From sequence record MG655267.1: a DNA stretch of 64,000 nucleotides; one strand, written 5' to 3'. Every line of letters starts with the position of its first letter. The first letter of the stretch is position 1. Below, one piece after another: positions 54,912 to 60,755 of this stretch. The translations under genes and the position numbers were made by a program. The notes under the pieces are model-generated. The model was not told the origin of the DNA and searched no databases. It saw only the letters and a program-made list of their open reading frames with translations.

Positions 54912-55617
54912 CCGTATCTTTGCCAATTATAATGGTTACATTGAAGCTATTGATGCACATTTTAAACCTACCTATCAACTGCAGCTAGCTGAGCAAGTCA
55001 TCCCGGCTGAGCAGATGGATAAGCTTGTAACCTGGATGGACCACAACACCCATGTCAAGGGTGCGACGGTCTACCTGATGGAGTTGGTGCCTGATCTCGA
55101 TAAACCGCATCCTGCACAATCAGAGATGCGTGTGTTTATTGCACTCGGTATGTTTCATCGTGAAGTCAACCCTGATTTGCCTTACTGGTGTCATGTACAT
55201 CGCCATTACCCGGTTAACCTCGCTGTCGACTTGATTGTTACTGACCTGCAAGGCGTTCCTGTAACTCATGCCGTTCTGACTGCGTTTAAGTCATTTGATC
55301 GAGCGCGTACCTACAGGGATAATCTCGGCGGTAAAGGCGGGCATCAACCGCATCACGAAATCCATACTGGCATTATTGACCAAAGTGGTAAGGTGATCTT
55401 CGAAGCCTACGGGAATATCAACTGGCATACCAAGAATGCCATTCGTCTGCTGGCCGAACGACAGATCCTGCAGGAAGATACCGAGTTGTCAGCGGTGTGG
55501 TTACTGGCGGGTTTAAAAGCAGGTGTCAACTGGAAAGTCGAAGACCATGTTGACATCATGAAAGCAATTGATACTTTCCGTCCGAGGAATACCCATGATT
55601 TTAACGGCTATGTTTAA
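54895..55617 (+). CDS. Hypothetical protein
   Basis: 240 aa, overlaps neighbours. Confidence 0.7.
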   Translation: MQNLNDRIFANYNGYIEAIDAHFKPTYQLQLAEQVIPAEQMDKLVTWMDHNTHVKGATVYLMELVPDLDKPHPAQSEMRVFIALGMFHREVNPDLPYWCHVHRHYPVNLAVDLIVTDLQGVPVTHAVLTAFKSFDRARTYRDNLGGKGGHQPHHEIHTGIIDQSGKVIFEAYGNINWHTKNAIRLLAERQILQEDTELSAVWLLAGLKAGVNWKVEDHVDIMKAIDTFRPRNTHDFNGYV

Positions 55618-56359
55618 GAAGTGCTTTGGTGCTTCATCTGTCTATAAAGAAGATGACGGCAGCACGCGTATTACCGCCGACCAGTATGAGCTTACGCTGG
55701 GGCGATCCTACAACCCTAAGCTTAAGCGTAAGGTAGGTCGGGGATTTGGCTTCTATGTCGAAAATGGTGAGAAGCTCGAGTTCGTCCTGCGGGGTTACTG
55801 GTTTGTGTTGATTGCCTGGAGCAAGAAGCGCAAATCACTCAAGTGGGACGAAGTGGAGAATGCACCGACCTACGGCTTCAATGTTGTCGACTCTGACTTA
55901 GCGATCTATCTGGGCAACGAATCCGCTAAGTCAGACAAACACATCAGCATGCGTAGTCGCAGCAAATACATCCCCCTGCCTTGGGCCTGGGTCTTCCATA
56001 AGCGTGAAGTGTTAACCACCCGTGACACCTGGACTGATGTCAAAGAAGGTGCGCTGTCTCAAGAGTGGTCGTTCCCCGCCACATACATCACCAAGCACAA
56101 TGAAGTGCAAGAGTTGATGGTCGAAGCGAAGATGGAGCGCATGAGTTGGCGCCTGGCATGGCTACCTTGGTTCGCGCCGGTTAGCAAGAAAGACCGCTCG
56201 GTAAGTTACAAGTACCACGGGAACGGTGGTAACGGGGTTGGTCACGATGCCAGTGGGTGGAAAGGCGGGGTCATCGGCGGTGGCATTATCATGCGGGACA
56301 ATGAACACAACCCGAAAGAAACATTCGACCGTTTAATTAAAGAGCAGCATTACGGCTAA
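55595..56359 (+). CDS. Hypothetical Trp-rich protein
   Basis: ATG 55595 after GAGGA. Confidence 0.7.
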   Translation: MILTAMFKKCFGASSVYKEDDGSTRITADQYELTLGRSYNPKLKRKVGRGFGFYVENGEKLEFVLRGYWFVLIAWSKKRKSLKWDEVENAPTYGFNVVDSDLAIYLGNESAKSDKHISMRSRSKYIPLPWAWVFHKREVLTTRDTWTDVKEGALSQEWSFPATYITKHNEVQELMVEAKMERMSWRLAWLPWFAPVSKKDRSVSYKYHGNGGNGVGHDASGWKGGVIGGGIIMRDNEHNPKETFDRLIKEQHYG

Positions 56360-56371
56360 GAAGGAAAGCAC

Positions 56372-57523
56372 ATGCGTCAGTATTTGGATGGGATTCGTTA
56401 CATCTTTGAGAACGGGTCACAACGAGGGGATCGCACCGGGGTAGGTACGTTGTCGGTGTTCTCGATGAAGCAGACTTACGATCTGCGTCTGGGATTCCCA
56501 CTGGTCACCAGTAAGAAAGTGCGTATCGATTTTATTATCGAAGAGCTCATCTCCTTCCTATCGGGTGACCCTGATATGCCGGGCGTGGGTATCTGGGATG
56601 ATTGGCGTGTCAAAGACGAAGTCTCTCGTGAAGTCCCGTTAGAGAACCACGAGCGTTTAAAACTCTGGGTTGAGAAGTCGGACCTGAAGTATAACGTTGC
56701 TTACCTTCAACTCAATGCGATGGGTTCTGTCGAAGCGGGTCATCGTTTCCTGGATGAGCAAGGGATTCCACGTAACAGAAAAGAAGTACTGGTAGCAGAA
56801 GGTGCACTCAATGCACCCTATGGGCCAGCCTGGCGTGCGTGGAAAGGTCGTCAGGGCGAAGTGCATGATCAGATCGGTTATCTGCTCAAGCTGCTTAAAA
56901 ACAATCCTACGAGCCGTCGTATGCTATTGTCTGCTTGGGACCCGGCGAACATGCCGGATGAGTCTATCAGCCCGCAGGATAACATCATTGATGGCAAGCC
57001 ATGTCTGACTCCGTGTCATTGGGCGTTTGAGCTGTACACTGACGAAATCCTGGCAGAGGAACGCCTTGATTGGGTCGAAGCTAATGCACCTAGCCTCTGG
57101 GAAGACTACAATGATCGTTCAGGGCGCGGTCAGTGGTTAGGCGACACAGACAGTAAGCGCCTTCATGAATTCCTGGACGAAGCCGGCGTACCGAAGTATT
57201 ACCTGGATCTGAAGTATCACCAACGTTCCTGTGACTATATGGTTGGCGTGCCGTATAACATCGCCAGCTATGCGGTGTTGCAGCACATGTTTGCGGCCAC
57301 CTGTAACATGATCCCGCGGATGATGGAAGCGGATATGACTAACATCCATATCTACAACTTCCACAAAACCAATGCGGTCATGCAGGCCAGTCGCAGCCCA
57401 CGCGCACTACCCACTCTAAAGGTACTCGCCGCTCACGATAAGTTGGAAGACTATACGTTGGAAGACTTTGAACTCGAAGGTTATGATCCGCATCCTTTTA
57501 TTAAATATAAAAGAGCGGTCTGA
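56372..57523 (+). CDS. thyA: Thymidylate synthase with two large insertions
   Basis: DRTGVGT, FPLVTSKK, YGPAWR, SRRMLLSAWDP, LTPCH (catalytic Cys), HQRSCD, GVPYNIASY (Asn = dUMP specificity), HIY. Confidence 0.95.
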   Translation: MRQYLDGIRYIFENGSQRGDRTGVGTLSVFSMKQTYDLRLGFPLVTSKKVRIDFIIEELISFLSGDPDMPGVGIWDDWRVKDEVSREVPLENHERLKLWVEKSDLKYNVAYLQLNAMGSVEAGHRFLDEQGIPRNRKEVLVAEGALNAPYGPAWRAWKGRQGEVHDQIGYLLKLLKNNPTSRRMLLSAWDPANMPDESISPQDNIIDGKPCLTPCHWAFELYTDEILAEERLDWVEANAPSLWEDYNDRSGRGQWLGDTDSKRLHEFLDEAGVPKYYLDLKYHQRSCDYMVGVPYNIASYAVLQHMFAATCNMIPRMMEADMTNIHIYNFHKTNAVMQASRSPRALPTLKVLAAHDKLEDYTLEDFELEGYDPHPFIKYKRAV

Positions 57524-58004: not shown

Positions 58005-58053
58005 GTCGGTGAATAACCTTTCACTAATTAACCAATCCGTAAGGAGTTTTATC

Positions 58054-59430
58054 ATGGCTGCATTAAAATCTAAAGTTGAACTGTTTCACTGGTATCAGGA
58101 ACTGAAAACTGAATTTAAAACCGGCAAGATTACCGTGTTCGAATTTGAGCGGCAAGTGCTCAGCGAAATTCTTTCCCTGACCGATACTGGTAAAACACCA
58201 TCTACTGCCAAAATCAGTCTGGTAGTGGACATCCTTAATTCTGTGGTTTTTGATCATGTGTTTACCGCAGACGGTATCATTGACCTGGACAACATGCTCG
58301 CTCGTGAACACGTACGCAACATTTCGGAATTGACGGCAGCACGCAATAACTTTATTACCATACAAGCCCAGGCCCGTCTGAACAAAGAAAAGGAACAGAC
58401 TGCGAAACCAGCAGAGCAGAAGGCGTTTGCCAAGTTTCCAACGAAAGAAGAGCTCGAATATTGGGTTAATGCCAGAAAGCTATTCCGTTATGGTAACCCC
58501 AATACGCTCGGCACTGAAGCATACCAGGAGGTTGTCAAATACTGGCATCTGGTCGATAAATATCTGGGTACATTAAAACTGGAACTGGATCACACCGACC
58601 CTAACTACGTCGATAACATCCTGTTGATTGACTACTTTGTATCGTTGGTCGCCAAGCAAGAGGTTCCTGAGGAAGAACGCAGGCATCTGAAAGACACACT
58701 TAGCAGTCTATATGCGTGCCCCATTAAAACCCCACACATCGATGCATTTGTCGAACGTGACCAACACCCCCTTCCAGTTAAGCCAAAACAACCACCCATC
58801 GCGCAACAAGCCATCGACCGCGCTATTGCCTGGCGTGAAGAGGAAACCAAAACAAACCATCAGCAAAAAGACATATTACGAGAATTCGCCGATCAATACT
58901 GTCCGGTAATGGTGGCCAAGCAACATGCCACTCAGCAGTTGTTTGATTTCGTTGCTCGTGCGGTGAAACGTGTCTTGACCGCCATTGCTCAGCCAAACAA
59001 CCCGGAAGACGCCGAGATGCTGGCAAAAGGTCATGCCATCAACATTCTCAATGTTAAGCATGGTGTAATTGGTGTCAGTACCACGATTACCAGAAACGGT
59101 CTGGTCAAGTTACGCATCTTCGCTGAACGTGAACTATGTAACGAGGACTACGGTATTCCGACTCTGTCGTATAATCAAGTCCGTCAATCACCTCATGCAA
59201 CGTTCAGCATACCAATGCCGGCACTGATAGATGGGTTCATTAACATGTGGGATATCCCTAATCAGGCCCCTCGCCATATGCATAATAGCGTAGGCGGTAT
59301 GTTGGGTAATCCCTATCCGTTACAGCAGCTTGATGGTTTGATGTCAGCTATTGCAAGAGAAACAGCCGAGTACGGCGTTACGCCTACTTATGGCATGATC
59401 GAAGACAGCATGATTGTTGTGCTGCATTAA
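58054..59430 (+). CDS. Hypothetical protein with two copies of a helical W...G...(Y/F)E module
   Basis: ATG 58054 after AAGGAG; KVELFHWYQELKTEFKTGKI and TKEELEYWVNARKLFRYG...LIDYFVSLVAKQE. Confidence 0.75.
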   Translation: MAALKSKVELFHWYQELKTEFKTGKITVFEFERQVLSEILSLTDTGKTPSTAKISLVVDILNSVVFDHVFTADGIIDLDNMLAREHVRNISELTAARNNFITIQAQARLNKEKEQTAKPAEQKAFAKFPTKEELEYWVNARKLFRYGNPNTLGTEAYQEVVKYWHLVDKYLGTLKLELDHTDPNYVDNILLIDYFVSLVAKQEVPEEERRHLKDTLSSLYACPIKTPHIDAFVERDQHPLPVKPKQPPIAQQAIDRAIAWREEETKTNHQQKDILREFADQYCPVMVAKQHATQQLFDFVARAVKRVLTAIAQPNNPEDAEMLAKGHAINILNVKHGVIGVSTTITRNGLVKLRIFAERELCNEDYGIPTLSYNQVRQSPHATFSIPMPALIDGFINMWDIPNQAPRHMHNSVGGMLGNPYPLQQLDGLMSAIARETAEYGVTPTYGMIEDSMIVVLH

Positions 59431-59437
59431 TTCACAC

Positions 59438-59468
59438 GGGGAGGTTTCCCTCCCCCTTTTATTTTTTA
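59438..59468 (+). terminator. Canonical intrinsic terminator
   Basis: GGGGAGG-TTTC-CCTCCCC-CTTTTATTTTTT. Confidence 0.75.
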
Positions 59469-59493
59469 ATTAACCTACTGTGAGAATTTAACC

Positions 59494-60195
59494 ATGAACA
59501 AAGAAACTTATACTACCTGGTACAATGGATTAAAAGAAAGATTGGCGACTGGGCACATTAATCAAGAACACTACGAGACACTTATTGTTGACAATCTAAG
59601 TTCATTGATTACTCATTTCTTCAATAGTCGATACGACGATGGTCATATGTCTCTGGAGGAGCATTTTGCGTTAGTTAATCATTATTTCGAACTGGTTGCT
59701 GATGCAGAAATATCAGAACGCAGTGCCATGCTCATGGTACGTTCTGTAGCTAGCAGTATTCAAAAGCTACCAGCGGCTAAAGCCTTCGCAGAGAAACATA
59801 ACACTCCGGCGCCGTCAATTAAAGAAATTCTTGGTAGTCGACCTGGTTTACTGCGTAAGCATGCTGCCAGCACGACCGAGAAGATGATAGGGTGTCCGGT
59901 GATCACCCAGGCCAACGAACCTGAGAACGAAGTAACCATTGACTTACCCTGGAAATTGGCATTGCACGTTTACAAAGGGTTCCTGGTAAAGGCGCTGATG
60001 TCAAAGCACGGATATAAATACAGTGATGCGTATAACTACATTACTGATCATCAGAACAAATACGACGAACTCTTGGCAGAAGTCCTCAACAACATTATTG
60101 CTAATGAGGAATCGCATCTGGTGTCGGTAGGTGGCGGCATCACTGCAGCGGGTACTGGTCTGGTGGTAAGCGGGATTATTAAGCCGGAGGAGTGA
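59494..60195 (+). CDS. Helical module fused to an RNA polymerase beta-prime fragment (switch 2/dock), non-catalytic
   Basis: GSRPGLLRKH...GCPVIT...LPWKLALHVYKGFL aligns to RpoC [10 protein letters not shown]...GRSVIT...LPKKMALELFKPFI; no NRAPTLH or NADFDGD. Confidence 0.65.
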   Translation: MNKETYTTWYNGLKERLATGHINQEHYETLIVDNLSSLITHFFNSRYDDGHMSLEEHFALVNHYFELVADAEISERSAMLMVRSVASSIQKLPAAKAFAEKHNTPAPSIKEILGSRPGLLRKHAASTTEKMIGCPVITQANEPENEVTIDLPWKLALHVYKGFLVKALMSKHGYKYSDAYNYITDHQNKYDELLAEVLNNIIANEESHLVSVGGGITAAGTGLVVSGIIKPEE

Positions 60196-60755
60196 TGAAA
60201 GGAGAGATAGAGACACGCTTCAGAAGACACTACGGCAACCACATTAAACGGGGTAGTGATATCGCAGTGCCTTTATACCACATTAGTCTACAGAATGACT
60301 TGGAGGGGCTATGGCGACCTAAAGCCCCTGACTCGCCATTTGATATTCCGAAGAAACCCAACATCATTACTGAAATGCCGCTCCCGCGTATCTGTGTAGC
60401 ACCATCTATCGAACAGTGCTTCTGGGCAATCTATCCCAATATCTCTAAGCTCTTTGAAGAGGAAGAATACGCAGCGGTTTGTTTTGCGGTTTATCAACCG
60501 ATTCTGCATGCCGGTATTGCTGTCGTGGATACCAGTACGTTAACGCAATGCCGACTAGTGCACGATGCACATATTACCGGCGAGCATTGGTTACTTAGTG
60601 ATACCACCATGTGTGTGATCGACTTTATTCAGGTTAATAACACCTCACACGGCGAGTTCGTAAAGTTCCATCCGTTTAATACCCCGGTTGGTAACGAATG
60701 GGAGCTCGCCCCTAAAAATGTTGTTTATCATTCACTTAAATTAACGGAGTTGTAA
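60192..60755 (+). CDS. ADP-ribosyltransferase-fold-like phage protein
   Basis: LYHIS, PRICVAPS, VHDAHITGEHW follow the ART H/R-S-E scaffold order. Confidence 0.5.
   Translation: MMKGEIETRFRRHYGNHIKRGSDIAVPLYHISLQNDLEGLWRPKAPDSPFDIPKKPNIITEMPLPRICVAPSIEQCFWAIYPNISKLFEEEEYAAVCFAVYQPILHAGIAVVDTSTLTQCRLVHDAHITGEHWLLSDTTMCVIDFIQVNNTSHGEFVKFHPFNTPVGNEWELAPKNVVYHSLKLTEL

Follow-up and report, generated by a model that had tools for sequence, protein, structure and literature searches.

The stretch of DNA analysed here (the window) is 100% identical, in register, to bases 1-64000 of MG655267.1, the genome of Erwinia phage vB_EamM_Bosolaphorus (Agricanvirus ray), a nucleus-forming jumbo phage with a genome of 272 kb. 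It contains gp71, which is annotated as encoding a hypothetical protein and which lies in a conserved gene order: Acb3, thymidylate synthase, a small open reading frame (ORF), gp70, gp71, gp72, gp73 and gp74, with small insertions. The gp71 protein was found to comprise three parts, namely an N-terminal module, a fragment of the RNA polymerase β′ subunit and a short tail (Table 1). As judged by homology, it is very probably a third paralogue, shortened and catalytically dead, of the N-terminal β′ subunit (β′-N) of the non-virion RNA polymerase (nvRNAP), the family of phiKZ gp55. It is an addition to the two complete polymerases of the phage and a piece of neither.

Table 1 Features of the gp71 locus in Bosolaphorus, numbered from the first base of the window
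Feature	Positions	Strand	Basis
gp70, 473 aa as annotated, upstream neighbour of gp71	58009-59430	+	Position relative to gp71 conserved
Terminator-like hairpin GGGGAGG-TTTC-CCTCCCC (7 pairs, 6 G-C) with T-run, in the gp70/gp71 gap	59438-59464	+	Consensus scan only
gp71 (BOSOLAPHORUS_71, equivalent of RAY gp070), 233 aa	59494-60195	+	ORF and annotation (hypothetical protein), PHROG 11276, PHROG 2987, 11 homologues
gp71 N-module, residues 1-108, all-helical, probably not polymerase-derived	59494-59817	+	pLDDT, hhalign, BLASTP, HMM
gp71 β′ fragment, residues 110-206: switch 2, first double-psi barrel strand, dock helices	59821-60111	+	BLASTP, PDB match, profile-profile comparison, HMM
gp71 tail, residues 207-233, glycine-rich hydrophobic (…GGGITAAGTG…KPEE)	60112-60192	+	Alignment, dN/dS
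Coupling site: GGAGGAG, Shine-Dalgarno sequence of gp72, in the last three gp71 codons	60186-60197	+	Read from sequence
gp72, 186 aa, translationally coupled to gp71 (by sequence)	60195-60755	+	Annotation, coupling site

Over its full length, gp71 matches its own family of unknown function, PHROG 11276 (E 8e-160, residues 1-233 on profile positions 1-233), and it is also matched by PHROG 2987, "RNA polymerase beta subunit" (E 4e-17). A gap-free BLASTP alignment places residues 110-203 on residues 271-364 of phiKZ gp55 (E 3e-10), and the sole significant sequence match in the PDB is a chain of the solved phiKZ nvRNAP, 7ogp_A (E 1.6e-5). When the gp71 family was compared with 44 full-length nvRNAP β′-N sequences, profile against profile (hhalign), residues 111-206 aligned with residues 291-386 of gp225, the genuine subunit of Bosolaphorus, at a probability of 99.5% (E 1e-22). 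A hidden Markov model (HMM) of nvRNAP β′-N subunits detected gp71 with an E of about 1e-28 in a target set of 13 sequences. The profile of the gp71 family in turn detected 228 proteins at E ≤ 1e-3 among 1.84 billion representatives, where the family itself forms one cluster at the 50% level. Among the 150 matches listed, most are about 370-570 aa long, like β′-N subunits, and profile positions about 110-208 fall at their residues about 240-400. With an HMM restricted to the shared segment, the gp71 family scores 73-90 bits and genuine subunits score 90-153 bits in leave-one-out comparisons (median 125), which places the family just below the most divergent real subunits.

The AlphaFold model of gp71 has a mean predicted local distance difference test score (pLDDT) of 78.5, and its dock helices, which hold many of the residues invariant in the family, reach about 90. 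Foldseek returned phiKZ gp55, AR9 β′-N and Thermus β′ as the top PDB neighbours of this model, with weak E values (0.05-0.9); the best PDB match is 8que_A (phiKZ gp55), and 7ogr_A superposes on the model with a root-mean-square deviation (rmsd) of 2.2 Å over 71 columns. The dock part of the model was also matched by a viral BFVD entry of 84 aa, I1VXK4 (target TM-score 0.75, rmsd 2.8 Å over 78 columns), which could mean that the dock also exists as a stand-alone or split piece in another phage; an entry with a similar accession, I1VXH8 (478 aa), ranks lower in the same match list.

These results agree with the initial annotation, which had described a stand-alone β′ fragment with switch 2 and dock at 59815-60099, i.e. 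residues 108-202, of a 233-aa ORF starting at 59494; the ORF was recovered and reads as quoted there. Two further statements of that annotation were likewise borne out, as detailed below: that the N-terminal ~100 aa are not related to RNA polymerase, and that the ORF stops before the motifs NRAPTLH and NADFDGD and is non-catalytic. In contrast, its choice of phiKZ gp74 and gp180 as nearest kin has to be replaced by the phiKZ gp55 family, since gp74 is the C-terminal half of β′ and gp180 is the β′-N of the virion polymerase; gp165, the virion-type β′-N of Bosolaphorus, was barely detectable with the same profile. Its alignment by eye with RpoC ~326-415 is correct in position and lacks direct significance, as the Pfam family PF00623 (RNA_pol_Rpb1_2) did not match gp71 at E ≤ 1, nor was the gathering threshold reached. 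Genuine phage β′-N subunits pass this model at 26.8-40 bits (cut-off 25.3), with positions 3-151 matching residues 297-435 of one of them (P0044) and positions 100-155 matching residues 391-450 of gp225. Residues 132-208 of gp71 thus correspond to roughly the first half of Rpb1 domain 2, with switch 2 before it. The correspondence with the switch 2 and dock of cellular RpoC is therefore transitive, via phage β′-N and the weak Foldseek match to Thermus β′, and it covers only the first part of Rpb1 domain 2. The resemblance of gp71 to β′ far exceeds what chance would give, although this holds by way of phage β′ subunits only.

With regard to the complete polymerases, the annotated RNA polymerase genes of Bosolaphorus are gp2, gp165, gp166, gp225, gp250, gp251 and gp273. 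A search of every ORF in the genome with the β′-N HMM detected gp225 (E 1.6e-160), gp71 (3e-26) and, weakly, gp165 (0.002), and nothing else. gp225 and gp71 belong to the same family, and the RAY equivalents of both are listed as homologues of phiKZ gp055 (PMC10299810, Table S3). Unlike gp71, gp225 has 495 aa, four zinc-finger cysteines and NADFDGD at position 435, and it follows gp224, the counterpart of the RAY shell gene gp222, in the shell (chimallin)-then-β′-N position that is also found in phiKZ, Noxifer and Eowyn. Its RAY equivalent, gp223, localises to the phage nucleus, as do RAY gp002, gp248 and gp249 (PMC10299810). gp165 carries DYDGD at position 483. It was also observed that gp225 (L007:10070-11557) is unusually divergent in the switch-2/dock region, with the second-lowest leave-one-out score among the 44 subunits, and that the near-universal PW motif of β′-N reads PR in gp225 and is kept in gp71.

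The β′-N profile alignment to gp71 ends at position 366 of 480, and a motif search for DxDGD found none in gp71, whereas the motif is present in gp225, gp165, Noxifer and Eowyn. The invariant or near-invariant cysteines of the Cys4 zinc finger in the β′-N family (C72, C74, C87 and C90) have no counterpart in gp71. Its sequence thus indicates that gp71 cannot be catalytic, cannot form a clamp and cannot bind zinc. At 233 aa it compares with about 420-520 aa for full β′-N subunits, and it is flanked by gp70 and gp72 rather than by a nuclear-shell gene. Compared with phiKZ gp55 (with gp56.1; 7OGP, 7OGR and 8QUE chain A; PHROG 2987), with which it shares switch 2, the barrel strand and the dock helices, gp71 is missing roughly the first 270 residues (zinc finger, clamp helices and lid) as well as the whole C-terminal part from the NRNPSL strand onwards, DFDGD included, and has instead an unrelated N-module and a unique tail.

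Short dock ORFs that end at or before the catalytic motif also occur as exons of intron-split β′ genes, such as the annotated 420-aa phiKZ ORF55 and two database proteins (P0022 and P0024). These, however, are pieces of one subunit that are rejoined by splicing (phiKZ gene 55 to 56.1), whereas gp71 begins with a domain of its own, ends at a conserved stop and contains no intron, and an intact subunit is encoded elsewhere in the genome. The possibility that gp71 is such an exon was rejected: there was no match to any Rfam family, introns included, in the window, gp72 matched no endonuclease, and intact gp225 is present.

The N-module is helical and confidently predicted (pLDDT above 90). Some HMM envelopes of the β′ match, and that of PHROG, extend to residue 54 or earlier, and we considered whether the module could be a diverged version of β′ residues 150-270. 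This found no support, as the isolated module (residues 1-108) showed no similarity to β′-N in hhalign (0.5% probability). Its relatives lie at the locus itself. Residues 3-41 of gp71 correspond to residues 22-60 of gp70, an N-terminal motif of roughly 40 residues (73% probability, E 3e-5), and residues 56-107 align with residues 202-256 of gp70 (BLASTP E 0.003); an N-module HMM run over the whole genome found gp70 as the only other carrier. In Erwinia phage AH06, an extra 191-aa ORF between the gp70-like and gp71-like genes (L009:4702-5277) has the N-module, with its VNHYF motif, and no β′ part, so that the N-module can be regarded as a small paralogous family at this locus. gp70 shares only the N-terminal motif with gp71. 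By eye, its NQAPRH and its similar length had made it a candidate for a second β′ paralogue, which was rejected on a probability of 0.4% against β′-N (hhalign); its AlphaFold model (pLDDT 69) had no polymerase match in the PDB, only generic helical repeats at a TM-score of about 0.14. The start of gp70 is probably mis-annotated, as its GTG start (58009-58053) adds 15 residues that are absent in seven of seven aligned homologues, all of which begin at M16 (58054).

The tail is nearly invariant among gp71 homologues that are only 55% identical overall. No β′-N profile position was aligned to it by hmmsearch or hmmalign. Its identification with barrel strands β2-β3, or with the stretch following DFDGD, thus found no support, although MAFFT had put it at the C-terminus of β′-N. 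AlphaFold draws it as a low-confidence hairpin (pLDDT below 50). Judged by its hydrophobicity, a C-terminal membrane anchor is rather unlikely: the best Kyte-Doolittle 19-mer reaches 1.48, against a usual threshold of 1.6 (1.53 for gp70 and 1.78 for gp72, neither of which has a predicted membrane segment), and a rough sum on the Hessa scale comes to +4.1 kcal/mol, where the likely membrane segments of gp75 and gp76 give +1.2 to +2.2.

Eleven homologues of gp71 were found in the databases, with 55-98% identity and lengths of 233-270 aa. They come from Agricanvirus genomes, from AH06, where the homologue is annotated as "RNA polymerase subunit beta′", and from metagenomic contigs of 190-288 kb; architecture and gene order are kept in AH06 and in metagenomic contigs of 225-288 kb. 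The ORF is intact in all 12 sequences (gp71 and its homologues), and the ratio of nonsynonymous to synonymous substitution rates (dN/dS) of the whole gene is 0.13-0.31 where synonymous sites are unsaturated, which indicates that gp71 is under purifying selection. In the tail, dN/dS falls to 0.01-0.08 with synonymous differences of 0.5-0.7; its invariance is thus at the protein level. An eroding pseudogene, which the initial annotation had named as an outcome that would speak against its reading, is incompatible with the intact ORFs, the low dN/dS and the conserved gene order, just as the other such outcome, the absence of a significant match to β′, is at odds with the profile-profile result.

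In tblastn searches, other jumbo phages gave one match per genome, in the genuine β′-N gene. The gp71 family is monophyletic (Shimodaira-Hasegawa-like approximate likelihood ratio test 99), has a long stem and is not sister to gp225 of the same phage. Based on 111 columns, the phylogeny did not resolve its position among nvRNAP β′-N subunits, and it consequently shows neither a duplication within the genome nor a transfer from another jumbo phage. Between Bosolaphorus and phage Ea35-70 (L014), the DNA is 96-100% identical across 5.6 kb except in one gap-free patch at about 59400-59890 (roughly 490 bp), where identity is 58-66%. This patch covers the region upstream of gp71 and codons 1 to about 133. 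As the synonymous sites within it have diverged, the patch points to allelic replacement by recombination and not to local drift.

Two of the database sequences deserve comment. One homologue (P0007, L011:6001-6813) has a C-terminal extension of 37 residues containing IPDFDGAAV, which is reminiscent of NADFDGD; it was not aligned by the β′-N profile and could be a relic or a chance resemblance. A further protein, P0018 (191 aa), had appeared to be a sign of a mobile tail and proved to be an artefactual spliced gene model. It lies on a 4.7-Mb contig of 40% GC (L015:7290-8036, GCA_054859325.1) that looks like a eukaryotic assembly, where it is flanked by reverse-transcriptase genes. Only degraded, frame-shifted pieces of a gp71 C-terminus and of a gp73 homologue are found on this contig, and these may stem from contamination, from a chimeric assembly or from an old insertion.

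With regard to the transcriptional context, the hairpin after gp70 suggests that gp71 starts a new unit, gp71-gp74, and it may help to define transcription units in Bosolaphorus. A shared promoter motif was sought upstream of gp71, and its frequency was not above chance. gp71-gp74 are tightly packed; the TGA stop of gp71 and the ATG of gp72 overlap by one base, and the same abutment is seen in Ea35-70, AH06 and L011. gp72 had no endonuclease or other family match in Pfam, PHROG or NCBIfam, and distant homologues of it are found in further phage-like contigs, where no neighbouring gene was called as gp71-like. The idea that gp72 supplies the missing catalytic half was dropped, as it has no DxDGD motif and no family match and occurs elsewhere without gp71.

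Further upstream, gp67 (55595-56359), annotated as hypothetical, is a clear Acb3 inhibitor of the cyclic oligonucleotide-based antiphage signalling system (CBASS; Pfam PF25187, E 2e-61). The thymidylate synthase (56372-57523) has 383 aa against the 266 positions of the Pfam model, which points to a large insertion. In AH06 (L009:775-2769), ThyA is called as two pieces (289 and 99 aa) with two small ORFs (38 and 156 aa) between them, the longer of which shows a weak I-HmuI/NUMOD-like match.

The reading that we favour, with a probability of roughly 30-40%, is that gp71 acts on phage transcription as a mimic of a polymerase interface. It is suggested by homology, as gp71 is non-catalytic and devoid of clamp and zinc finger, yet keeps the dock almost as it is in genuine subunits. 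gp71 would bind one of the usual contacts of the β′ dock/switch-2 region, and this binding would tune the assembly, timing or activity of phage transcription. A candidate partner is the linker or C-terminal domain of the σ-like fifth subunit, the homologue of phiKZ gp68. In phiKZ, gp68 contacts gp55, and its linker passes through the cleft and the exit channel like σ region 3.2 (PMC8287921, PMC7618050). The β flap side of the RNA exit channel and nascent RNA are other candidates, and the N-module and tail could supply specificity or anchoring.

Several observations weigh against this proposal. gp71 lies in an accessory region near the anti-CBASS gene, not in the transcription gene block. The switch-2/strand part of its model is of low confidence by itself (pLDDT 49-58), so that the fragment may fold differently outside β′. 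Several residues that face nucleic acid and are conserved in β′-N, those of the GTR and HFS motifs, are replaced in gp71. In addition, gp71 is absent from the proteins given in text and table for crude-lysate mass spectrometry of RAY and Deimos-Minion (PMC6690015).

A bolder form of the proposal, which we consider improbable, is that gp71 works as a dominant-negative fragment of β′, blocking the assembly of a polymerase or re-programming it. gp71 would then be the first virus-encoded "subunit mimic" to be described for a multisubunit RNA polymerase. It might time the nvRNAP of its own phage or sabotage that of a co-infecting related jumbo phage, with the swappable N-module setting target specificity and the invariant tail serving as effector or anchor. 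Under mimicry, gp71 would share with T7 Gp2, T4 AsiA and Xp10 P7 the occupation of a polymerase interface. The analogy is functional only, since these proteins target the host enzyme and none of them is derived from a polymerase subunit.

Four other explanations of a conserved gp71 were weighed, none of which we regard as likely. The one that survives best, although it still appears rather unlikely, is that the fold has been exapted for a role outside transcription, for example as a scaffold working through the N-module and the invariant tail. The most constrained part of gp71 is indeed the tail, which has no polymerase counterpart; moreover, the N-module recurs without a β′ part in gp70 and in the AH06 ORF, and gp71 is coupled to gp72, which occurs elsewhere without it. 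Nevertheless, the β′ segment retains nearly as much of the family signature as real subunits do, which is hard to explain if the polymerase-related surface is irrelevant.

It is unlikely, to a similar degree, that gp71 is an inter-phage weapon or immunity factor, i.e. that it mimics the consensus β′-N of other chimalliviruses, poisons the assembly of a co-infecting phage's nvRNAP and spares the diverged gp225. In accordance with this, gp71 is nearer to foreign β′-N subunits (33% identity to Noxifer, E 2e-12, and 29% to Eowyn) than to gp225 (21%, E 0.017), and the HMM of its family gives gp225 19.6 bits, against at least 38 bits for the 150 best-listed foreign proteins. The low segment score of gp225 and the loss of its PW motif fit as well, as does the recombinational swap over the N-module between phages that are otherwise 96-100% identical; recombinational allele swaps are typical of conflict genes. 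However, the comparison covers only a short segment, the tree lends it no resolution, and the divergence of gp225 may have an unrelated cause.

That gp71 joins a phage polymerase as an extra stable component, changing for instance the promoter class, seems doubtful. An alternative form of the nvRNAP has been proposed for middle promoters of phiKZ (PMC7598289), the jumbo-phage polymerases are assembled from split pieces, and the 84-aa BFVD entry corresponds to the dock part alone. However, the genuine β′-N already holds this segment, so that the canonical architecture offers no free position for another copy, and gp71 is neither annotated as a virion protein nor among those reported from the lysates.

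Slightly more doubtful is the suggestion of the initial annotation that gp71 could act as a decoy and divert a host defence by which the phage polymerase is sensed or targeted. The presence of Acb3 in the same accessory region, upstream of gp70, the allelic replacement at the 5′ end of gp71 and the confinement of the family to one phage clade would all be in keeping with a decoy. However, no defence system is known to recognise the β′ dock of a phage nvRNAP. No anti-defence family matched gp70-gp73 in Pfam, PHROG or NCBIfam, the padloc library not having been searched. In addition, the genuine nvRNAP is active within the protein nucleus and thus separated from sensors in the cytoplasm (PMC10299810). 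The modulation of termination that the initial annotation offered beside the decoy is likewise conjectural, as is its view of gp71 as a captured piece of polymerase.

Finally, a decaying remnant or an exon of a split β′ gene is essentially excluded, even though the ORF ends before the catalytic motif, phiKZ gp55 itself is interrupted by an intron at that point and many of the short database matches are such exons, because 12 sequences, with identities as low as 55%, all have the gene intact at low dN/dS and saturated synonymous sites, and because it has its own N-terminal domain and conserved stop, with no Rfam intron in the window and an intact, NADFDGD-bearing gp225 elsewhere.

The homology of gp71-type proteins to gp55 is already on record. 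In a table entry without analysis, Prichard et al. 2023 (PMC10299810) give phiKZ gp055 as the homologue of both gp223 and gp070 of RAY; gp070 is drawn as a non-block core gene, and gp223 was localised while gp070 was not. A 2020 review of jumbo-phage polymerases (PMC7598289) does not mention an extra β′ copy. We found no earlier account of the truncation with its loss of catalytic and clamp parts, of the anatomy in three parts, of the pattern of selection or of the recombination patch. The label "RNA polymerase β′" in AH06, and core-gene tables that pair RAY gp070 with gp223, lump a non-catalytic paralogue with a real subunit.

Jumbo-phage polymerases assemble from split β and β′ pieces without the cellular α platform, and how these pieces meet and enter the phage nucleus is an open question (PMC7598289; bioRxiv 10.64898/2026.09.21.753271). 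gp71 would represent a naturally selected, stand-alone copy of an interface and thus a ready-made probe for the partners of the β′ dock/switch-2 surface. If its role is regulatory or antagonistic, gp71 would add subunit mimicry to the known means by which phages control transcription or compete. In either case, gp71 represents a known phage polymerase subunit in a non-catalytic variant, and its function is directly testable.

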